From: Rebecca billardiae RCC1528
Taxonomy: Eukaryota; Protista; Haptophyta
Length of the DNA: 64,000 bases
Reading direction: 5' to 3'
Assembly: GCA_965240325.2 (NCBI GenBank)
Contig: OZ251229.1
Location: 2,294,001-2,358,000 of the forward strand
The notes beneath the pieces are model-generated. The model did not search any database. It had not been told where the DNA came from and was given only the letters and a program-made list of their open reading frames with translations. A program made the translations under genes and the position numbers. This document shows, one piece after another, positions 6,463-19,447 of this stretch. Position 1 is the stretch's first letter; each line of letters begins with the position of its first letter.

Positions 6463-9400
6463 ATGCTGCTGGCGGCCTCAGCAGCCTGGCTCCTGCTGTC
6501 GCAGGCGGCGCCAGGCGCGCTGCCCGCGGCGAGCGGCCGCCCCTTCCCGTGGCGCCGAGGGCTGCAAGGTTTGTAGCGCCATGCGTCATCCTGCCCGCAC
6601 GCCGTGACGCTCGTTGCGGCCTCGTCTCACACGCGTCGGGCGCGCGCACGCGCCTTGCCCGCGCGGGTTCGCGCAGACACGGGTGGAGTGGCGAATGCGC
6701 GGCTGATCCGCGAGGTGAATCCGCCGTACGGCAGCGTACAGGGCACGACGGAAGTCTCGATTACTGCCGACTTCTCCGACGCGCGCCCAGGGGCGCAGGC
6801 GCACTGCAGATTCGGGGACACACACGTGGTAGCAGTCGTTGTCGGCTCGAGCACACTGCGCTGCATCGCGCCGCAGGCGGACGCCACTGGTGCGTGGCGG
6901 GGCGCGCGCCTGCGGGCTCCGTCGCACACGCCTCGCCCGGCGCGTCACCCACCCCGCGCCCACCCGCCCCACCGACCCGCCCGCCCGCCGCCGCCGCCGA
7001 GCAGGCCAGGTCTTCGTCTCGGCGAGCGTCGGCGCGCTGCAGTTCCGCACTCACGGTCCGTCCTTCACCTACTACGACCCGTACGCGCTGCCGGAGGTGC
7101 TCTCCGTCGAGCCGAGAGCCGCGGCGGTGGACTCGGGCGCTGCGGTCACAGTGCACGGCTCCAACTTCGCCGCGACGGGCGTCCGGCTCGTCTGCGAGTT
7201 CGGCTCGATCCGCGCGCTCGCGCCCGCCGCGTTTGTGGACAGTGGAAAGGTGCTCTGCACGGCGCCCATCACGACGCGGCCGCAGTCGGTGGACGTGCGC
7301 GTGGCGACGGACGGCAGCTCGTTCTCGGAGAGCTCGGCGCAGTTCACCCTCTTCGACGAGCGCGCCCCGCCGCGCATCGACTCCGTCACGCCGCAGTGCG
7401 CGGGCCGCTCCGCGCCGTCGACACAGATCACGATCGTCGGATCCAATCTGCGGCCGGGCGCGGGGCTCGGCTGCGCGTTCGGTGAGCTGCCGCTGCAGCC
7501 GGCGACGTTCGTCACGGCGTCGGTGGTGCTGTGCATGGCGCCCGCCGCGGCGCGCGCGCCGAGGGACACGCTCGACCTGCGCCTCAGCGAGGACGGCGGG
7601 CGCACGTGGTCGGAGGCCGTGCCGTTTGTTTACTACTCGCCCGACGCGACGCCCGTCGTGCGCGACGTGCGACCGCCTTTCGCGGACAACGCGGGCGCGG
7701 CCGAGCTGCGCGTGCGCGGCGCGAACTTCGCGCCGACGGGCGCGGCGCTGCAGTGCTCGTTCGAGCGCGCGACCTCGGCCCCCGACGGCGCCGCCGCCCC
7801 GCCGTCCGGCCCCGCGCTGCGCTCGGCCGCGCGGTTCGTCTCGACGTCGGAGGTGGCGTGCGACGCGCCGCAGACCGACGCAGAGGCGACGATGCGCGTG
7901 CGCGTGAGCATCGACGGGCGCACGTTCGGCACGTCGGACGGCTCGGTGGTGCTGTACGACGCGGAGCTGCCGCCGCTCGTGCGCGAGGTGCGCCCCGCGT
8001 ACGGCACGCTCGCCGGCGCGTCCGGCGTCGCGGGCCGCGGCGGCGCGGTCACGATCGTCGCGGAGAACATCGCGCCCGTCAAGGACGGGCTGGACTGCCG
8101 GTTCGGCGAGCTCGGCGACGTGCCCGCGTCCTTCGTGGACGAGCACACGGCGCTGTGCGCGCCGCCGGCGTCGGGCCGGCCGCGCACGGTCGAGGTGGCG
8201 CTCGCCTTCGACGGCGTCCACTTCTCGCACAGCCACCGCCCGTACACGTACTACGACGCGGCGCGCGGCGCGCACGTCGACGCGCTCGACCCGGGCGCGG
8301 GCGAGCTGCACGCGCGCACGCGCGTGACGGTGCTCGGCTCCAACTTCTACCCGGCGCCGCAGCTGCTGTGCGCGCTCGAGCCGGCGGCGCCGCGCGGGGG
8401 CAGCGGCGCCGCACTCGCCGCGCCGCCCGCCCAGCCCCTGCCGAGCACCGTGCGCGCCGAGTTCCTCTCCTCCGACCGGATCGCGTGCGAGCTGCCCGCC
8501 GCGACCGAGCCTTCGGCCGCGCTCGTTTCTGTTCTGGAGGAGGAGAGTGCCAACGGTCGCTCCTCGGCGGTGCTCGAGCACAACGCGATGCGCTTCGAGT
8601 ACTACGACGCGACGGCGGCGCCGACGCTCTCGCGGATCACGCCCGCGCTCGGCGCGTACGACGCGTCCACGCGCGTCACGCTCGAGGGCGCGGGCTTCGT
8701 GCCGGCCGGCCGCCGCCTCGTGTGTCAGTTTGGCGAGGCGCGCGTGGTCGCGCGATTCGTCTCGGCGTCGCTCGCCGAGTGCGACGCGCCGCCCGTCGCG
8801 GATGGCGCGGCGACGGGCGGCGCGGAGGACGGCTCGCTGGGCGACGTGGACGTCGGCATCTCCATCGACGCCGGCGGCTCGTTCGCCACGCTGCGCGCCG
8901 CATTCACCTACTGGGACGCGCACAACGTGCCGCGCGTGATCTCGGTCGAGCCAAAATTCGTCTCGGTGACAGAGCGCGCGCCGGTCGTCGCGGTGCGCAC
9001 GGCGAACAGCGCGCCGACGGCGGCGCTCGCGTGCGCGTGGGGCGCGGCGGGGCGCACGCCGGGCGCGTACCTCGGCGCCGGCCTCGTGCAGTGCGCCGTC
9101 CCCGCCGCGGAGGTGGGCGAGGAGCTGCCGCTGCAGCTCACCACCGACGGTGTGCACCTGAGCGACGAGTTAGGTGCGGCCGTGCGAGTGTACGACTCGA
9201 CGCGCGCGCCCGCCGCCGCGCGCGCGGTGCCCGCCGCGGTGCCGGTGGGCTCGCGCGCGACGGTGCGCGTGCTCGGGCACAACCTCGCGCCGACGGGCGC
9301 GGTGCGCTGCGAGCTCTCGCCCGCCGCCGACTCGGCCGTGCACACCGTCTCGGTCGCGGCCGCGGACGGCGGCGCGCGCGATTCGCTCGAGGTGAGCGGC

Positions 9401-12400
9401 ACGCTCGCCGACTCGAGCACGGTGCTGTGCGCGCTGCCAGCGTTCGACAAGCCGCAGACGCTCGAGCTCGGGCTGACGCTCGACGGCGGCGCGCACGTGA
9501 GCGAGTCCGCCGCGCGGCTCACCGTGTACGACGCGGACGCGCCCGCCGGCGTGACCAGCGTCGAGCCCGCGTACGGCGACGTTGCGCACCCGCCAGAGCT
9601 GAGCGTTCGCGGGTATAACTTTGGCGCCGGCTCGCGCGGCAGGGGCGGCGGCCGACGGCTGGCGAGCGGGCACAACGTGTGCTGCCTATTCGGCGAGCGG
9701 CTCTCCGCGCCGGCGCGCTTCGTGAGCGAGACCGAGCTGGCGTGCGTCGCGCCGCGGGCCGCCGCGCCCGGCTCCGCGCTCGTGCGCGTCTCGACGGACG
9801 GGTGCGCGGGCCGCGCGCCGCCCGAGGCCGAAGGGGCGCTGTTCACGTATTTCGACGGAGCGTACGCGCCCGCCGTGGACGCGGTGAGCCCGGCGGTGAC
9901 GGGCGCGCGCGCGCGCGCGGCGCTCGAGGTGCGCGTGCGCAACGCCGCGCCCACGCCCGGGCTGGTGTGCACCTTCGAGTCCCTCGGCGCCTCGCCCGCC
10001 ACATTCGTCGCGTCCGGGCTGGTCGAGTGCGCCGCGCCGCAGTCGGATGTGTCGCGCACCGTCGTGGTGCGCGTCTCGCGCGGCGGCGGCGCGTCGCTCC
10101 CGCCGCTGCCCGACGAGGGCGGCGAGGCGAGGCGCGACCAGCTGACGCTCGCGGACCTCGAGAGCGCGCCGCTCGCCAAGGAGTGCTCGCCGCGCGCGAT
10201 GCCCGCCGGCACGGGCGGCGCGGTCGCGGTGATGGGCGCGGGCTTTGCGCGCCCGGCCGCGGGCGCGGTGTCATGCAGATTCGGCGCGGGCGGCTACGTG
10301 GTGCGCGGTTCGTATGTCCGGCCCAACCTGGTGCGCTGCGCGGCGCCCGCGTCGGACGAGCCGCAGACGGTCGGCGTGGGCGTGTCGCTCGACGGCGGCG
10401 CCACGTACGGCTCCTCCGCCGCCGTCTTCAGCTGGTGGGTCCGCGGCGCGCCGCCGGTGTGCACCTCGGTCACGCCCAAGTTCGCGCACCTCGGAGGCGG
10501 CGAGCTAGTGCGCGTGAGCGGCTCGGGATTCGCCGACCTGGGCGACGGGCTGCGCTGCGTGATCGGCGCGACGGAGGTGCCCGCGCGGCTCGACGTGAGC
10601 GGCGAGGTGCTCTGCGTCACGCCCGCCGCGGCCGAGCCCGCCACGCGCGGCGTGTACGTCAGCGTCGACGGGCTGACGTGCGCGGACAGCGCGGACGCGC
10701 GTCTCACGTTTTACGACGCGCTCGCGCCGCCGACGGTCGATGCGCTCGCGCCCGCGTTCGTCGAGGTGGGGCAGGGCGGGCGGCTGCGCGTGCACGGCGC
10801 GAACTTCGCGCCGACGCCGCGGCTGGGCTGCTCCTTCGGCCCGGACATCGGCACCGTCGTCGCCTCCTTCGCCTCGACCAACGCGATCTTCTGCGCCGCG
10901 CCGCCGTGGGAGCGAGACACGGTGGTCCCGGTGCGTGTCACTCTGGACGGCTCAGCCTGGTCGGCCGACGCGCCCGAGCTCGCGTACTACCGCCCGCCGT
11001 CGGTGTCGTCGGTGCAGCCGCGCGGCGGCGACGTGGGCCGCGAGACGCTCGTCGACGTGCGCGGGCGCAACTTCTTCGCCGAGCACAGCGCCTCCAACCT
11101 CTTCTGCGCGCTCGGCCCGCCGCTGGATGAGGAGGATTGGGCGGACGGCGTTGACGATGACGGTGGCGGCGGCGGCGCGAGCGGCGCCGACGCGGCCGCG
11201 CTCGCCGGGCCGTCCACGCCGGGCGGCGGCGCGCGCTCCGCGGACGAGATCGGCGCGCACGACGAGCACGGCCGGCCGCTGACGGTGCTCGGCGCGCAGC
11301 TCGTGGGCGAGACGCAGCTGCGCTGCCCCATCCCTGCGCTCGGCGTGCCGTCGACGCGGCCCCTGTACGTGTCAACGACCGGCGGCGGCGTCGACGCGCA
11401 CTGGGTGCGCGGCGAGGGCGCGGCCGGCAGCTTCTCGGCGTACGACGCGCGCGCGCCCGCGCGCATCGACGAGCTCTCGCCGCGCGCGGCGAGCGTGGAC
11501 GGCGGCGACCTGATCTCCATACTCGGCGCGAACGTGCCGCCGCCCTCTGACGGCTTCGAGCTGGTGTGCCGCTTCGGGTTTGACCACGCGAGGCACGCTG
11601 ACGCGGCGGACGCGCCGCAGCGCGGCGGCGCGCGCGCGCCGCGCTCCGCGCCGATCGTGGCGCCGGCGACGCACGTGACGGTGTCGCGGCTGCGCTGCAC
11701 GGCGCCCGCCTCGCCCGGCCGCGCCAAGGTCTCGGTGCCCGTCGAGGTCTCCACCTCGGGCGCGGGCGGCGAATGGCTGCCGGCGGGCGAGCTCACTTAC
11801 TACGACCCGCGCGAACCTCCGGTCGTCACGAGCGCCACGCCCAAGTTCGGGGCCAAGGAGGAGCGCACGGCGGTGACGGTGCACGGCGCGAACTTCGCGC
11901 CGACCGCGCGGCTGGGCTGCCTCTTCGACGGCGTGGCCGACGGCCGCGTGCGCGGCTCGTTCATCTCGCCCACCTCGATCGCGTGCCTCTCGCCGCCCGC
12001 GGACGCGCCCGGAAACTTCCAGGAAGCGCACGTGCACGTCACGCTCGACGGCGCGTCGCGCTCGCGCGGGTACGCCGAGTACGTGTACTACCTCGCGCCG
12101 GTGGTGACGTCGATCGTGCCGCGCGCGGGCCCGCTCGAGGGCGGCACGCGGCTCACCGTGCGCGGCCACCGCTTCTTCCACCTCGACGAGCTCGCGTCAC
12201 GCGGCGGCAACACACTCGTGGAGTTCGGCGTGGTGGGCGCGGGCGGCGTCGCGGTGCACGCCTCGTTCGTGGACGAGGACGACCTGCTCGTCGTCACGCC
12301 GCCGGCGCCGCGCTCGCTGCAGGGCGCGGGCTCGGTGCCCGTCTCGGTCTCGGTCACCGACGGCGCCTCCTACTCCTCGTCCGTCGTGCGCTACACGTAC

Positions 12401-13852
12401 TACGACCTCAACGCGCCCGCGGACGCGCTCGCGGCCGTTCCGGCGTACGGCCCTGTTTCGTCCTTCTCGCACAGGCAGCTGTCGGAGGTGCTGGTCGTCG
12501 CGCACAACGCGGCGCCGACGGCCGCGCTCGCGTGCGACGTGGGCGGGCGCCCGACGCAGGCGACCTTCGTCAACGCCACCGCCGTGCGCTGCGAGCTGCC
12601 CGAGCGGCGCGACGGCGGCACGGTCGATGTGGCTCTCACGCTCGACGGACGCGCGCGCGGCAAGCGAGCGAAATTCACATACTACGACCCGAGCGCGCCG
12701 GTGCGCGCCACGTCCGCGTCGCCGAGCTGGGCGGCGGACTGGGAAGGCGCGGGCGTGGGCGGCGCGCCAGGCGCGCCCGGCGGCGGCGGCACAGTCGTCG
12801 CGGTGCACGGCGCCGAGTTTGTGCCGTCGGAGGCGGGCCTCGCGTGTCGCTTTGCGCCCGATGCGGGCGGCGGCGGGTTTGGCGGCGGCGCGGCGCGCGG
12901 CGCGCAGGTCGAGGCGACGTTCGACTCGTGGTCGCAGGTGCTCTGCGCGACGCCCGCGTGGCCGCAGCCCGAGCAGGTGCGCCTCTGCGTCTCGGTCGAC
13001 GGCGGCGCCACCTTCTCCGCCACGTGCGCGCCCTTCTCCTTTATGGACGCGCCGCGCCTGGACGCGCTCGAGGCGGCGACCGACGCCGGCCTGGCCGGCT
13101 GCGACAAGGACGACGCGTGCAACGTCGTCGGCCGCGGGATCAACTTCCCGCCGGGGCCCGGGCTGCTGCTGCGCTTCTACGACGGCGACGAGTACGCGCG
13201 CGCCACCGCGCTCGGCGCGCGCGCGTCGCTCGTCGCCGTCGCTGAGGTCGAGGCGACACAGACGTCCACGACTTCGCTGCGCGCGCGCCTCCTGCCGTAC
13301 CCGCGCCGCGCGACGCTCGCGGTCGCGCTCGCCGTGCGCACGGGCGGCGCGGACGGGCGCTCGACGGCGGCGGGCGCGTCGCGCTGCACCTTCACGCGCT
13401 TCGACGCCGACCTGCCGCCGACCCTCGCAGCGGTCGAGCCGGCGATCACGCGCGTGAGCCCTCGGATCGGCGCGGCGCCGGGCGCGGCCGACGAGGTGCT
13501 TGTGCGCGGCGACAACTTCCCGCCGCGGCTCGGCGCGCTGCTCAAGTGCGAGTTCGGCGCGACGGCGGTGCAGGCCACCTTCGTGAGCGTCTCCGCCGTG
13601 CGCTGCGTGCCGCCGCCCATGCACGCGCCCGCCACCGTGCAGCTCAACGTGCGCGACGGCGCGCACGGCGGCTCGCCGCGCCGCGCTGAGGAGCGCGTCT
13701 CATTCACGTGGCACAACCCGACGCGGCCGCTCGAGGCGGGCTCGGCGGAGCCCGCGTTCGAGGTGCTCGGCATGCGCGCGCACGCGATCACCGTGCGCGG
13801 CTCCAACTTCGCGCCGGCGCTGCTCCCGCCCCGGCCCTCGGAGAAAGCGCTG

Positions 13853-13890
<38 letters not shown>

Positions 13891-16800
13891 GCTGCGTTGC
13901 TCATGGTGCGGAGGCGCGTCACGCACGGCGGGCACCTTCGTCTCGCACGACGTGGCGCTGTGCCAGTCGATGCAGGGCTCGTCGCCGCACTCGTGCGCGC
14001 TCTCGCTCACGCTCGCCGGCTCGCCCTTCGACGAGTCCAACTCGCCCAACGTCACCTACACCTGGTACGATCCGTACACGCCGCCGTCGCTCGAGCGCGT
14101 GCGGCCGCGCGCCGCCGACCTCAACGCTCCGGTGGACGTCGCGTTCGACGGGCGCAACCTGGCGCCGACCGACGGGCTGCGCTGCCGCTTCGGCGAGCGC
14201 GCGGGCGGCACGCTCGTGCAGGCCTCGTTCGTCGACTCGGGCCACGTGCGCTGCACCGCGCCGCACGCGAGCGTCGCGCACGCGGTCGACGTGGCTCTCA
14301 CGCTCGACGGCGGTCTCACGTGGTCGGACGACGCGCGCGGCGCGCAGCCGGTCCGCTTCGTCTTCTTCGACATGTCGCGGCTGGCGAACGTGTTCTCGGT
14401 CGAGCCGCCGTACGGGCCGCTCGGCGGCGGCTCGTCCGTCCGCGTCACCGGCGACAACTTCGCACCGCTCGGCGCGGACGTGCTGGTGTGCCACTTCGGC
14501 GAGCTGGCGGTCGGCCCTGCCTCGTTTGTCGACGAGCGCTCAGTGCTGTGCTCGCCGCCGCGCGCGCCCGCGCCGCAGGGCGTGGACGTGCGCGTCTCGA
14601 TCGACGGCGCGCACTTCGGCTCGAGCACGGCGGTGTACGCGTACTACGACCCGCTGCGCCCGCCCGAGCTCACCGCCGTCTCGCCCGCGTTCATCGACCT
14701 CGCCACCCACGACGGCGCAGACGTGCGCGTCACGCTGCGAGGCTCCAACTTTGCGCCAACCGACCGCGGCCGCTCGGCCGCGGACGACCCGCTCCGCTGC
14801 CGCTTCGGCCCGGCCGAGGCGGCGGCGGCGTACATCGACGCGGGCGCGGTGTCGTGCATCGCGCCCGCGCAGGCCTCGCCCACCATCGTCGCGGCGCGCG
14901 CCGCGACCGACGGCGCGCGCTTCTCGCAGGCGGGCGCGGACATGGTCTGGTTTGACTCGCGGCTGCCCGCCGAGATGCGCGCTCTCTCGCCCCTCGACGG
15001 CGACAAGGACGAGACGACGCTGCTCACCGTGCGCGCGGCGAACGTGGGGCCGGTCGCTGGGCTGGGCTGCGCGCTGCGCCCGCTCGAGGGCGAGGAGGGC
15101 AGCGTGCAGCCCGCGTGGGCGCCGGGCACCCTCGTCTCCGCCGAGGAGCTGCACTGCGCCGCGCCGCCGCACCCGGAGCTTGCGACGATGCGTGTGCACG
15201 TCTCGCTCGACGGCGGTCAGACGCTCTCGACCGACTCGCGCCGCTTCACGTACTTCGACCGGGACCACCTCGCGGACGCGCTGTCGATCGAGCCCGAGGC
15301 GGGGCCGCTCGCCGGGCGCACGCTGATCACGGTGCACGGCCACGACTTCGCGCCGGAGGGCGCCGCGCTGCGCTGCCTCTTTGGCGAGGGCTCGGAGCAG
15401 GGCGCCAGGAGCGTCGCGGCCACGTTTGTGGACGCGCACGCGGTGCTGTGCAGCTCGCCGCCGGCGCGCGAGCCGCGCTCGGCGCGCGTGCACGTGACGA
15501 ACGACGGGCAGCACTACGGCCACTCCGACGCGTGGTTCTCGTGGTACGACCCGTCGCGCCTCCCGGACGCGCTCAGCATCGAGCCCCGGTACGCCGACGT
15601 GCACGGCGGCGCGCGCGTCGAAGTGCATGCCCGCAACCTCGCGCCCACGGGCGACAAGCTGCGCTGCCGCTTCAGCACGCGCGACCTGAGCGTGCAGGCG
15701 ACCGTACCGGGCACGTGGGACTCGCACGCGCGCGGCGGCAACCCGGGGCTGCTGTGCGACTCGCCGCGGATCGGCCCAAGCGCCGGCGCGGGCGCGGCGC
15801 ACATGCTGAGCGCCGCGGCGGCCGCGGGCCGCGGCGACGCGGTCGACCCTCGCAAGCTCGAGCTGGTGAAGCGCGCCTCGCTCGCGCTCGTGCAGGTGAG
15901 CATCGACGGCACGTTCGCGCCGCTCGACCAGGGGGACGCGCGCGTGCTCCCGTCGGCCGACGGCCGGCCCGGCGGCGCCGCCGTCCCCTTCGACCTGTAC
16001 GACGCGTCGGTGCCGCCGATCGTCGCGCAGCTCGAGCCGGCGGCCGGCCGGTGCGGCGACGGCGGCCGGTGGGTGCGAAACCTCGCAGAGTCGGACGGCG
16101 CGGACGGCGAGGGCGGCGAGTGCGACGTCGAGCGCGGCGGGCCGGGGTGCGTGGAGGTGTCGGCGGGGACCAACCTCACCATCCTCGGCGCGAACTACGC
16201 GCCCACGCCCGAGCTGCAGTGCGCCTTCGGCGAGCACCTCGAGGTGCGCGTGCGCGCGGCGTTCATCTCGCCTGTCGAGATCCGCTGCCCGCTGCCGCTC
16301 GCGCGGCGCGCGGACGAGGGCTTCACGACGCGGCGGAGCGTGACGGTGGACGTGTCGAACGACGGCTTCACGTGGCACACGACGCGCGCGGTGTACGTGT
16401 ACAGCAAGGGCTGCCTGATGCACCCGCACACCATGTGGGCGATCATCCTCGCCGTGCTCGGCGTGCTTCTCTGCTGCCTGTTGCTCGCGTGCGCGGCCGC
16501 GCGCGTGCGCGCGCTCAACACGCGCGAGGCGAGCATGCGCGATCGGATCCGGCTGCTCGACCAGCCGGCGGACGAGAGCGCGCACGCGCTGACGCACACC
16601 GCGGAGGAGCCCGCGCTGCTTACCGAGCCCGCCGCGTGGCAGCGCCGCGGCGTGCTGCGCCTCACGCTGATGCGCGGCTCGCTGCTGCGCGCGCGGCCCG
16701 GCGCGGACGGCGTCGCGGATTACGTCGTGCGCGTGAAGGCGGGCAAGGAGCGGTTCATCTCCACGCCGAGGCGCGGCGAGGGCTCGGCGACGTGGGAGCG

Positions 16801-17288
16801 CGGCGAGGCGTTCGACGCGCGCGGCAAGCTGGGCGACTTCGTCTCCGCGCCGATCAGCTTCCGCCTCAAGGACGCCGCCGCCCTCCGCGACGACGAGGAC
16901 GCGCTGGGCGTCGGAGTGCTCGATCTCTCGGACGTACTTCTGCCCGAGGCCCTCGCGGTCGACGCGGCAGAGGAGGCGGCCCAGGCGCGCGCCGGCGCGG
17001 GCGCCAAGCTGAGCGCGGAGGAGCTGGAGGCGCGCGCCGCCGCCGTCGCGGTCGAGATCGGCGGCACGGGCGCGGAGCACGCGCTGCAGGTGCCCCTCGA
17101 TCCGCAGGGCACGCTCTTCCTCTTCGCTCGCTGGTATGATGCTGCGCTCGGCCCGCCGCCGCCCAAGCCCGGCGCCAAGGCTGCGCGCGCGCCGCCGCTG
17201 GCGCGCCCGCCGCCCGCGCCCGCGCCCGCGCCCGAGCCGCCGCGCCCGCCGTCGCCGCGCCCGGCGCCGCCGCCCGTCGTCGAGCGCG

Positions 17289-17319
<31 letters not shown>

Positions 17320-19447
17320 CACCCTCGACCTCTCGGACGCGCGGCTCGACCGCGCGGGCACGCTGTTTGTTCACGTGATGAGCGGGCACGGCCTGCTCGC
17401 CGCCGACCGCGGCGGCACGTCCGACCCGTTCGTCAAGGTGAGGCTGGCCGGGCTGCCGAAGCAGCAGACGCGCACGATCAAGAAGACGCTCGACCCGGTG
17501 TGGGACCGCGAGGGCGACGAGCTCAAGTTCGGCCCCGCGCGGCTGCGCGAGCTGCTCCACGAGCCTATGCTCCTTAAGGTGCGCGACGCGGATTTTGGAT
17601 TCACGCCGGGACACGACGACCCGTTGGGCGATGTGGAGGTCGACCTGACGCGGCCGGAGCTGCTCGGGCTGCGCGACGACCCGGCGCCGTGCCGCGTCGA
17701 GCTGCCCACGCAGGGCTGGCTGATGGTGCGCACGCGGTTCGTCCCCACGGCGCCGCCCTCGGTCGCGAGCTCGTCGCTGTCCGACTCGAGGCCGCACTCC
17801 CCGCGCTGGTCGGAGCAGAGCGACCCCGCGGACGTGACGACGGCGCAGCGCGCGGCGGACGCGGGCGCGGCGCTGCGCGCGCGCGAGGCGCTGCTCAGCG
17901 CGCCGGGCCGCGTCGAGCTCGTGGTGGAGTCGGGCTCGCAGCTGCGCGTCGGCGACGCGAAGACGTCCGACTACTTCGTGCGCCTCACCGCCGCGGCGGC
18001 GGGCGCGGCGCGGAAGCAGCGCAAGCAGACGAGCGTTCGCGAGCGCTCCGGCACCGAGCCGCACTGGAATGAAACGCTCGAGTTCTTCGGAAGCCTCGGC
18101 TCGCTCGCCGCCACGCCGCTTCGGGTGGAGCTGTTCGACAGGGACCCGCTGCGGGACGAGAAGCTGGGCGAGGGGCAGCTCTCGCTGCAGCCGCTGATGG
18201 ACGCGCTGCGCGAGGGGAAGGGCGGCGAGGGAGAGCGCTACCCGGTGCGTGTGCCGCTCGAGCCGCAGGGCGAACTCAAGCTGAGCGCCGGATGGTTCGC
18301 CGCCAGGCGCGGGAGCGGGCTGGGGCGCACGTCGCGCGAGCCGTCGCTCCCGGGGACGCCGTCGGGGCGGCTCACGCCGCAGCCCACGCCGACGGTCGGC
18401 CGAGGCGCCGCGGCGGCCGGGCCCGGCGCGGGCGGGGCTGGCTCGCGCCCGCCCGCCGCGCAGCCGCGCGCGTCGCCGCCGCCGCAGCCGCCGCCGCAGC
18501 GCCAGCCGCAGCCCTCGCCGCCGCCCCAGTCGGCGCCGACCAGCGCCGCGCGCCCCTCGCCCTCTGGCGGGCGCTACCCGGACGAGCCGCAGCCGCCGTC
18601 GGCGCAGCGGCCGCGCGAGTCGCCCACCGCCCGCCCGCCCTCGGCCTCCCGACCGCCCGCCGGCGCCCGCCCCGGGACGGACGCGGACGAGGCGACCGAG
18701 CGCGCGGTCGCGATGGCGCAGTCGGGCGCGCTGCACGTGCTCGTGCGCGGCGCGCGCGGCCTCCGCGGCGCCGCGCGCGACGGCAGCTCCGACCCGTACG
18801 TCGAGGTGCGCCCGCCTGGCGGGGCCAAGCCCGCCAAGACGAAGCACCTCAAGAAGACGCTCAGCCCCGAGTGGAACCAGGAGCTCGTCTTCAGCGGCAA
18901 GCGGGGGTGCGCGACGCGCGACGCGCGACATGCGACGGGCCGCGCGCGACGCGCGACGCGAGACTGTGTGGGCGGCAGTAGCGCCAGCGTGCCCGCCCGC
19001 GCGCGTCTCACGCGCTCGCCCGCCGCGCGGTGCGCACGCGCTCCCCGCAGGGAGCTGACCGGCGCGCTCAACGGCGCGCCCGCGGAGCTGCACGTGCTGC
19101 ACCACGAAACGTTCCCGCGGAAGCCGGACTCGCTCGGCGCGGTGCGCGCCGACCTGCAGCCGCTGCTCGTGTCCGATGAGCAGTTCCCAATGGACCTGCC
19201 CATCCCTTCGCCGAACAGCGGCACGCTCGGCATTATTGCGTGGTTCGAGCCCACGGACCCTGCGTCCAAGCCGCGGCGCACCGCCTCGTTCCCGCGGAGG
19301 CCCTCCTTCAAGCGCAAGGATGCTGCCGCGCTGGCGGCATCCCGCACCGCAGGGAGCGGCGGCGGACGTGGTGCTCCGACCGGGGGTGCGGCCGAGGGCA
19401 CCACCGCGACCCAGCAGCCGGCAGCATCGCGGCCGCAGATGGTGTAA
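6463..19447 (+). CDS. Giant type-I membrane protein (~4205 aa): signal peptide, ~30 IPT/TIG repeats, TM helix, four C2 domains with Pro-rich linkers; exons 6463-6568, 6677-6889, 7005-18906, 19051-19447
   Basis: Repeats of P.V..V.P..G...G...V.V.G.NFAPT..L.C.FG......A.FV....V.C..P.......V.VS.DG..F.....F.YYD. TM MWAIILAVLGVLLCCLLLACAA at ~16434-16500. C2 motifs include GHGLLAADRGGTSDPFVKV..KKTLDPVW..VRDAD and DGSSDPYVEV..KKTLSPEWNQ. The three GT-AG introns have consistent phases and the spliced length is divisible by 3. Confidence 0.88.

Follow-up and report, generated by a model that had tools for sequence, protein, structure and literature searches.

Haptophytes rank among the major primary producers of the sea. 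To our knowledge, almost nothing has been established at the molecular level about their cell surface, the secretion of their scales and their behaviour triggered by Ca2+. The locus considered here raises the question of whether one gene of the haptophyte Rebecca billardiae RCC1528 encodes a single protein of about 4200 residues that joins a long array of IPT/TIG repeats to a tail of C2 domains, as had been proposed by a sequence-only reading, and what such a protein may do. All positions refer to the window, i.e., the whole stretch of 64,000 nucleotides analysed (contig OZ251229.1, positions 2,294,001 to 2,358,000 of the forward strand).

The gene and its reading frame

The region 6463-19447 of the forward strand comprises one gene of four exons (Table 1). 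An open frame of 4,202 codons was found by the ORF scan at 6839-19447 (+); as a stop is expected about every 80 codons in a random frame at 76% GC, the arithmetical chance of such a frame is about 1e-23. The GC content at the codon positions 1/2/3 is 0.75/0.59/0.95 in the coding frame, with the third-position value (GC3) uniform over the TIG, transmembrane (TM) and C2 parts. The open frame, the uniform GC3 and the same layout in the homologs described below bear out the claim of a single protein. On the antisense strand, an ORF of 1,521 codons is present at 14540-19105.

At the 5' end, the hydrophobic signal-like peptide followed by RRGLQ, which had been pointed out previously, was recovered from position 6463, with a GT donor at 6569 directly 3' of exon 1. 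The start at 6463 is preferred over an in-frame ATG at about 6341, which is surrounded by AT-richer sequence and from which the hydrophobic segment would end up buried. No weight was given to RRGLQ since the N-termini of the homologs lack this motif. The frame stays open and the TIG repeat is restored only with the splice combinations using 6568 and 6677 (or 6689). When exon 2 is joined to exon 3 (starting at 7002 or 7005), TIG repeat 1 becomes complete over the splice, exon 3 contributing its 24 initial residues (a partial match, HMM positions 70-91). The 11.9-kb exon suggested earlier was retained, with the addition of a 144-nt in-frame intron that probably splits C2_4. Within the latter stretch the codon periodicity is gone (GC2 0.85 and GC3 0.79 vs 0.59 and 0.95 in the exons), its 48 encoded residues are missing from the ortholog P0001 of Pavlovales sp. 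CCMP2436, the fragment P0002 ends abruptly at the point where the intron would start, and the Pfam C2 match of C2_4 stops at the same boundary. The product would thus comprise about 4,206 residues, or 4,254 if the 144 nt are retained. The searches and folds were run on the exons individually, and the joins were used only for the frame check and for viewing C2_4.

Table 1. Features of the TIG-TM-C2 gene (positions in the window)
Feature	Positions	Strand	Description	Basis
Exon 1	6463..6568	+	Start codon, signal-peptide-like N-terminus ending ...PWRRGLQ	Direct sequence reading
Intron 1	6569..6676	+	GT..AG, 108 nt	Splice-combination check
Exon 2	6677..6889	+	N-terminal two thirds of TIG repeat 1	
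Intron 2	6890..7001	+	GT..AG; acceptor 7001 or 7004	
Exon 3	7002..18906	+	11.9 kb: end of TIG repeat 1 to repeat 30, TM helix, C2_1-C2_3, first half of C2_4	
TIG repeats 2-30	7085..16405	+	Tandem, ~90-150 aa each	
Membrane-proximal TIG and extracellular motif	16118..16438	+	Specialised TIG (RCGDGG insert), GC-x3-4-[FH]T-x2-M	
Single TM helix	16439..16501	+	Cys-Cys...Cys near cytosolic end, then Arg-rich flank	Hydropathy scan
C2_1	16640..17143	+	Divergent, ~40-residue helical-hairpin insertion, degenerate Ca2+ site	
Pro-rich spacer	17159..17341	+	61 residues, 48% Pro	
C2_2	17342..17761	+	Canonical synaptotagmin type, ligands D-D-D-D-D	Pfam C2
C2_3	17891..18376	+	Ligand positions D-D-D-D-E	Pfam C2
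Pro/Ala/Arg-rich spacer	18377..18706	+	111 residues, 29% Pro	
C2_4, first half	18707..18906	+	Pfam positions 1-60, Lys-rich strand KPAKTKHLKKT	
Intron 3 (probable)	18907..19050	+	144 nt, GT..AG, in frame, stop-free; inside C2_4	
Exon 4 start, C2_4 second half	19051..19255	+	His/Glu replacing two loop-3 Asp	
C-terminal tail and stop codon	19256..19447	+	Low complexity	

Domains on the two sides of the membrane

The product is a predicted type I membrane protein with a signal peptide, 30 TIG repeats, one TM helix and a tail of four C2 domains. The ectodomain comprises 3,140 residues, and the earlier estimate of about 30 tandem repeats proved accurate by Pfam and by an HMM built from the repeats, with 29 units in the large exon besides the split first one, most neighbours being just 3 residues apart. 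The IPT/TIG profile (PF01833) matched with E=3e-127 (415 bits vs the cut-off of 20.9) and TIG_plexin with E=5e-25, the Pfam matches to the whole protein being limited to TIG, TIG_plexin, Anth_Ig, Ig_CFAP65 (below its cut-off) and C2. Near-invariant positions include the Cys pair C37 and C58 (27 of 29 repeats), P10, G40, P61 and G77. The model of a single unit (pLDDT 95.7) is nearest to the EBF IPT/TIG fold (TM 0.82-0.85) and to the plexin and MET IPT domains, which superpose on it, and the repeats are 34-42% identical to each other, far above their likeness to the TIGs of other genes in the genome. The signal peptide, the near-invariant Cys pair and the IPT/TIG fold together argue for an outside-facing array.

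Extracellular tandem IPT/TIG repeats before a single TM helix are also known in plexins, MET/RON, fibrocystin (PKHD1) and Dictyostelium TgrB1/TgrC1. However, the present array is 3-10 times longer than in these proteins and C2 domains form the output in the cytosol, while no Sema, PSI, kinase, RasGAP-like, G8 or PbH1 domain was found by Pfam.

Homology within the family extends through the last TIG, the juxtamembrane motif and the TM helix. The product of 16118..16438 is 33% identical to the equivalent region of Chrysochromulina tobinii (P0018; E=1e-22), its juxtamembrane motif was found in 6/6 family members examined, and the reciprocal search from the environmental P0153 matched only this locus in the 72-Mb genome. 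The single TM helix with juxtamembrane Cys, likewise anticipated, was located by the hydropathy scan at residues 3145-3165 of the translation of 7007-19444, and by the positive-inside rule the following C2 tail is predicted to be cytosolic.

The tail, of about 980 residues, carries the four C2 domains on Pro-rich spacers that had been listed from the letters. Three of them exceed the cut-off of the C2 profile (PF00168; E=3e-40); C2_1, missed by Pfam, matches the family C2 profile (hhalign 98%, E=1.3e-13) and is predicted to fold as a C2 sandwich (AF2, pLDDT 82), its top PDB structural matches by Foldseek being CAR1/CAR4, OsGAP1 and the E-Syt2 C2. The best PDB sequence match of C2_2 is the synaptotagmin-7 C2A (E=1e-12), and in the alignment to the synaptotagmin-7/-1 C2A every loop Asp is conserved. 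The five acidic ligands of loops 1 and 3 that define the synaptotagmin C2A type are present in C2_2 and C2_3, and are incomplete in C2_1 and C2_4, whose sites are degenerate both here and in the nearest ortholog, that of CCMP2436. Accordingly, the acidic loops described previously were found as described, but the proposal of Ca2+-dependent membrane binding may reasonably be kept for C2_2 and C2_3 only.

In its order, i.e., an outside or luminal N-terminus, one TM helix, Cys at the cytosolic membrane edge and then a C2 of the Ca2+-binding type, the protein resembles the synaptotagmins (Syt1, Syt7). However, in the latter the luminal segment is short and lacks a signal peptide, and the C2 domains number exactly two and are tightly linked (C2A-C2B), unlike the giant ectodomain with a signal peptide and the four widely spaced C2 domains found here. 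The extended synaptotagmins, tricalbins and MCTPs likewise carry a series of linker-joined C2 domains on a membrane anchor, but the present protein has a type I helix and a giant ectodomain in place of the SMP, the hairpin anchor or the two-TM PRT_C. The SMP lipid-transfer domain, which in extended synaptotagmins and tricalbins sits ahead of the C2 domains next to the anchor, was not found by Pfam in the whole protein or in the tail. The defining MCTP layout consists of three N-terminal C2 domains and a C-terminal two-helix PRT_C membrane region, whereas here the single TM precedes the C2 domains, with no hydrophobic segment after them in the hydropathy scan and no PRT_C by Pfam. The same scan revealed no C-terminal tail anchor, and Pfam no FerI, FerA, FerB or DysF, of the ferlins.

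Relatives in haptophytes

Judged by domain layout and motifs, the locus is a member of a small, unnamed haptophyte TIG-TM-C2 family. Relatives of the same layout were found in C. tobinii (KOO35979.1 = UniRef100_A0A0M0KB30), Pavlovales sp. CCMP2436 (KAJ1638917.1, which carries only a 'hypothetical' name) and at least five environmental protein clusters (ENA/JGI metagenome clusters P0007, P0129, P0153, P0165-P0167). They have in common with the present protein a signal peptide, an array of at least 15-18 TIG units with RCGDGG in the last one, the juxtamembrane motif, one TM helix and from 2 to 4 C2 domains; the protein of R. billardiae has the longest array and four C2 domains. It shares 44-56% identity with CCMP2436 and, at the junction, about 33% with C. 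tobinii, and C2_1 with its helical insertion was seen only in the two Pavlovales sequences. P0001, the CCMP2436 ortholog, has just two C2 domains, both degenerate, on contiguous DNA, so that Ca2+ sensing may be inessential to the family. TIG fragments lie upstream of this ortholog on the same strand, where the assembly is full of N gaps. The terminal canonical C2 of the prymnesiophyte members is nearer to another small C2 gene of the R. billardiae genome than to C2_2, so that any orthology assigned to single C2 domains is tentative. Beyond the family, the C. tobinii tail is closest to E-Syt1, tricalbin-like proteins and ferlins, which favours a Ca2+/lipid-binding tail.

These relatives bear on the possibility that a secreted TIG gene and a cytosolic multi-C2 gene were read as one at 76% GC, or that the locus is a pseudogene. 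GC-rich DNA does yield long spurious ORFs, such as the antisense one mentioned above; however, the in-frame TM helix falls precisely between the TIG and C2 parts, the codon periodicity is uniform, the junction is the most specifically conserved region, and the fused layout recurs in no fewer than seven further independent sequences. Among them, P0153 (2,990 aa) and P0007 (2,470 aa) are complete single uninterrupted ORFs on independent contigs, running from the signal peptide through the TIG array and TM helix to the C2 domains. An artefact is therefore considered highly improbable.

Within its own genome the gene is single-copy: the genome search found no paralog of the TM and C2_1 region, and none of the other giant TIG-bearing ORFs coincides with a C2 match among the matches listed in both searches. 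The top multi-C2 matches P0003, P0005 and P0011 lack TIG and were set aside, and the word-index search with C2_2-C2_3 gave only two long multi-C2 proteins, both TIG-free. The search of the same kind with the whole protein, scored on the tail, gave no match, the low-complexity Pro/Ala words having probably swamped the candidates, and the ESM Atlas search returned generic C2 clusters or no match. The search of a literature library found no paper there on the combination of a TIG array with a C2 tail, nor on the homolog accessions.

Thus, the statement that no characterised protein combines the two parts agrees with the database and literature searches, and the architecture is undescribed; it is not unique, being already public under wrong or empty names and conserved across haptophytes. 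Of the objection foreseen in the earlier reading, an architecture both described and widespread, one half therefore holds. The label of the C. tobinii homolog, 'multiple C2 and transmembrane domain-containing protein 1-like', is wrong and is corrected here, as the protein, with a TIG array, a single TM and then C2 domains, is not an MCTP. The surprise is moderate, as the building blocks are familiar, the relatives are already deposited and the function is inferred only. Nevertheless, the family, conserved in both haptophyte classes, would combine a giant Ig-like rod on the extracellular side with a Ca2+/lipid module of the synaptotagmin/E-Syt kind at the cytosolic end, and provides a concrete, testable handle on haptophyte cell-surface biology.

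Proposed function

The explanation that we favour, at slightly better than even chances, is that of a TIG rod outside the cell or in a lumen with a synaptotagmin/E-Syt-like tail that docks on acidic membranes upon a rise of Ca2+. The array would form a stiff rod with a length on the order of 100 nm, directed either outwards or into a secretory lumen, and may serve as an adhesive or coat/matrix-holding element, while the C2 domains of the tail would function as they do in synaptotagmins and extended synaptotagmins. C2_1 and C2_4, both rich in Lys and with degenerate Ca2+ sites, may stay on or near the membrane as long as Ca2+ is at its resting level, and with the Ca2+ rise C2_2 and C2_3 would dock onto acidic phospholipids, conceivably of the same membrane or of one tens of nm away within reach of the polyproline spacers. 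This could couple Ca2+ signals to the rod, be it to its position, its clustering or its delivery. The roles put forward earlier, in scale or vesicle exocytosis and in haptonema or flagellar sensing, are tentative.

A more far-reaching proposal, regarded as tentative and rather unlikely, is a new class of surface receptors or adhesins without an enzyme or adaptor domain, whose output would be the Ca2+-switched docking of C2 domains to a second membrane. If true, cortical membrane contact or fusion would be linked, mechanically and in time, to an external rod of 100 nm, e.g., in the delivery of the surface coat or of scales, or in the contact of haptophyte cells with substrate and prey.

The synaptotagmin-like order of luminal N-terminus, TM, juxtamembrane Cys and C2, together with the closeness of C2_2 to the synaptotagmin-7/-1 C2A among solved structures, would also suit a vesicle-resident Ca2+ sensor, in which the TIG rod lies in the lumen of secretory (e.g., scale- or coat-forming) vesicles and the tail triggers fusion, the protein delivering its own ectodomain to the surface by Ca2+-regulated fusion. 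However, four C2 domains on long spacers differ from a tight C2A-C2B tandem, and family members have between 2 and 4 of them, so that we hold this reading to be doubtful.

Comparably low is the probability given to a protein with a chiefly structural role in coat or adhesion, its C2 domains being constitutive, Ca2+-independent lipid or protein anchors to the cortex (e.g., the peripheral ER or the cytoskeleton). It is consistent with the degenerate C2_1 and C2_4 sites in both Pavlovales sequences, the only C2 domains of CCMP2436, with the Lys-rich strand of C2_4, a candidate of the kind binding PI(4,5)P2, and with the CAR-like helical insertion of C2_1. But the acidic sites are complete in C2_2 and C2_3 here, and all prymnesiophyte-type members, like the fragment P0002, retain one fully canonical C2, a conservation that speaks for Ca2+ binding being under selection.

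Gene model and open frame

A single receptor of 4200 aa had been proposed at 6463-19447 in the sequence-only reading, and one gene of four exons is indeed predicted there, with a product of ~4,206 residues; retention of the 144 nt of the probable third intron would raise this to 4,254. Frame +2 is free of stops from 6839 to 19447 (4,202 codons), in a window with a GC content of 60-77%, and of 72-77% over the gene; if a stop probability of ~1.3% per random codon is assumed at the local composition, the chance of such a frame is ~1e-23 by our own arithmetic. The GC content at codon positions 1, 2 and 3 is 0.75, 0.59 and 0.95, alike in the ectodomain and the tail. The splices 6568/6677 and 6889/7002 (or 7005) are the only combination that keeps the frame open, and with the same splices exon 2 and the initial 24 residues of exon 3 together yield a whole TIG repeat, downstream of a hydrophobic N-terminus that agrees with the signal peptide and RRGLQ motif noted beforehand.

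A third intron probably lies within C2_4, the last of the four C2 domains of the tail (C2_1 to C2_4, numbered from the membrane helix): the codon periodicity is lost there (GC2 0.85, GC3 0.79), the Pfam C2 match ends at its edge, at profile position 60, the 48 residues encoded by it are absent from the ortholog of Pavlovales sp. CCMP2436, and the environmental fragment P0002 ends at the same point. Searches were made with single exons, and joined exons served only for local frame checks. The long antisense frame opposite the tail-coding region is almost certainly no gene and a by-product of the 95% GC3 in the sense frame, of which such a frame is the usual mirror; nothing independent supports it, and every family match is located on the plus strand.

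Features of the gene and related frames (window positions unless a contig n of the 72-Mb R. billardiae genome, G000:Cn, or the CCMP2436 ortholog locus L016, MU631327.1 168579-192731, is named)
Feature	Location	Strand	Remarks
Exon 1	ATG 6463 to GT donor 6569	+	hydrophobic signal-peptide-like segment, C-end ...PWRRGLQ
RGD tripeptide	about 15790-15830		Ala/Gly-rich loop inserted in TIG repeat 29
TM helix, sole	16439-16501	+	Cys-Cys...Cys near cytosolic end, then Arg-rich flank
Intron 3 (probable)	18907-19050	+	within C2_4; 144 nt, in frame, GT..AG, no stop
Antisense ORF	14540-19105	-	1,521 codons
TIG fragments upstream of ortholog	L016 766-1278, 6146-6316	same as ortholog	
TIG-bearing frame	G000:C32:534194		16,357 aa
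TIG-bearing frame	G000:C10:2853545		12,452 aa
TIG-bearing cluster	G000:C19:1572552-1906003		six frames, about 5,100-5,900 aa, identical TIG scores
C2-bearing frame	G000:C7:2900471-2900776	-	6,218 aa
C2 locus	G000:C39:506558-511653	+	open frames of 2,051 and 936 aa; at least 8 C2 matches

Relatives in haptophytes and environmental sequences

With the last TIG, the TM helix and the C2 region as the query, HMMER was run exhaustively against 1.84 billion representatives and returned 1,674 matches, mostly ordinary multi-C2 proteins. When TIG, TM and C2 were located on the 150 best of these, five proved to carry both TIG and C2. With their cluster members, these five are P0001 (the best match, KAJ1638917.1, Pavlovales sp. 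CCMP2436; 44% identity over the last TIGs-TM-C2_1 and 56% over C2_4), P0018 (KOO35979.1, Chrysochromulina tobinii, 2,465 aa; SP-18 TIG-TM-2 C2) and the environmental P0007 (15 TIG-TM-4 C2), P0129 (15 TIG-TM-2 C2) and P0024/P0153 (2,990 aa; SP-18 TIG-TM-4 C2). Three further members, P0165, P0166 and P0167, came from a word search with the tail of C. tobinii, in which the next-best named proteins were E-Syt1, tricalbin-like proteins and ferlins. That the TIG and C2 regions belong to two genes, or that their union is an artefact, is highly improbable, since P0153 and P0007 are each encoded by one uninterrupted ORF on their contigs, which is independent evidence that both parts form one gene.

The family homology peaks at the TIG/TM junction, with an RCGDGG insert in the last TIG of both the R. 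billardiae and C. tobinii proteins (33% identity, E=1e-22) and the motif GC-x3-4-[FH]T-x2-M directly before the helix in all six members examined. In the reciprocal search of the 72-Mb genome with the P0153 junction, the sole match was the gene under study, and no TM+C2_1 paralog was found in this genome. The members in Pavlovales and C. tobinii indicate that the family predates the Pavlovophyceae/Prymnesiophyceae split; it may also have members outside haptophytes, the inspection having covered the best 150 of the 1,674 matches. The gene model of the CCMP2436 ortholog is broken off by runs of N. The TIG fragments upstream of it suggest that the deposited entry of 839 aa probably represents just the last, C-terminal fifth of the actual protein. 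The combination had been thought uncharacterised, and a literature search found no description of it or of the member accessions; however, such relatives as KOO35979.1 and KAJ1638917.1 are already deposited. Thus, the TIG-TM-C2 proteins are an undescribed but already deposited family of known parts, and no singleton.

The TIG ectodomain

The repeat-trained HMM resolved 29 TIG units in exon 3 which, together with the split first unit, give 30, as approximately counted before, with a Pfam TIG match at E=3e-127 and secondary matches to TIG_plexin and Anth_Ig; the gap between neighbouring units is mostly only three residues. The units are 26-47% identical to repeat 2, the first full repeat, and they resemble each other more closely than they resemble TIGs encoded by other genes of this genome, which points to an old rather than recent internal expansion. 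Near-invariant are the positions P10, C37, G40, C58, P61 and G77, and the Cys pair, retained in 27 of 29 units, is compatible with disulfide formation in an oxidising compartment, either extracellular or luminal. The structure predicted for a single unit from an alignment of the other repeats (pLDDT 95.7) was best superposed on the IPT/TIG domain of EBF (TM 0.82-0.85), followed by the IPT domains of plexin and MET. If each Ig-like domain spans ~3.5-4 nm, the array, when extended, would reach a length on the order of 100 nm.

The RGD tripeptide, at residues about 2925-2940 of the translated 7007-19444 in the long insertion of repeat 29, could easily be fortuitous, the proteome being rich in Arg, Gly and Asp. 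Giant open frames with one or a few TIG domains number in the dozens genome-wide, and the near-identical copies on contig 19 look as if they had arisen recently by tandem or dispersed expansion; among the matches listed genome-wide, none of these frames coincides with a C2 match.

Membrane helix, C2 tail and calcium-ligand positions

The single helix with juxtamembrane Cys was recovered, and by the positive-inside rule its Arg-rich flank would place the tail in the cytosol. The four C2 domains on Pro-rich linkers were likewise found, three of them by Pfam. C2_1, not detected by Pfam, aligns over its full length to a C2 profile built from the family (98% probability, E=1.3e-13), and its predicted fold (pLDDT 82) is a C2 sandwich into which two helices are inserted, the top PDB neighbours being the C2 domains of Arabidopsis CAR1/CAR4, rice OsGAP1 and E-Syt2; thus, all four domains are real. 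The spacers comprise 61 aa with 48% Pro and 111 aa with 29% Pro, and C2_4 carries a Lys-rich strand.

Five Ca2+-ligand positions were anchored on the alignment of C2_2 to the synaptotagmin-7/-1 C2A and then read in every C2. By this alignment, the acidic sites of C2_2 (D-D-D-D-D, as in its P0002 counterpart) and C2_3 (D-D-D-D-E; S-D-G-D-G in P0002) are intact, in line with the earlier claim, while C2_1 reads (P or D)-D-D-A-D (P-P-D-L-E in P0001) and C2_4, with the previously noted His at a later Asp position, (A or D)-D-H-E-D (N-D-N-A-E in P0001). The CCMP2436 ortholog has on contiguous DNA only C2_1 and C2_4, both degenerate, and among prymnesiophyte-type members the canonical terminal C2 is closer to that of a small C2 gene at another R. 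billardiae locus than to C2_2, both of which would limit a Ca2+ reading; even so, at least one fully canonical C2 is kept in every prymnesiophyte-type member and in P0002. A structural coat protein with a Ca2+-independent cortical anchor is an unlikely description.

By analogy with synaptotagmin and E-Syt, we somewhat favour a rod anchored by a Ca2+-responsive lipid-binding tail: the TIG array would form a rod on the surface or in a lumen, held by the cytosolic tail, which upon a Ca2+ rise would bind acidic phospholipids of the protein's own membrane or, via the polyproline spacers, of another one tens of nm away. A vesicle-resident fusion sensor is as doubtful as the coat protein. The architecture, the topology signals, the conservation in the family and the intact acidic sites of C2_2 and C2_3 are established. 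The initial interpretation of a tether with Ca2+-dependent membrane binding is upheld in part, as a reasonable reading for C2_2 and C2_3 but not for the degenerate C2_1 and C2_4.

In its architecture, the protein would work like an IPT receptor ectodomain joined to a tail resembling multi-C2 membrane-docking proteins, and by its predicted domains it belongs to none of the named families compared. Pfam detected no Sema, PSI, GAP or kinase domains, unlike in plexin and MET, no G8 or PbH1, unlike in fibrocystin, no SMP, unlike in E-Syt/tricalbin, no PRT_C, unlike in MCTP, and no ferlin domains; synaptotagmin proper is excluded by the C2 count and the ectodomain. For KOO35979.1 (UniRef100_A0A0M0KB30), a protein with 18 TIG domains, the public name 'multiple C2 and transmembrane domain-containing protein 1-like' misleads, and the NCBI label "MCTP1-like" was rejected, as one TM precedes two C2 domains without the MCTP-type C-terminal membrane region.
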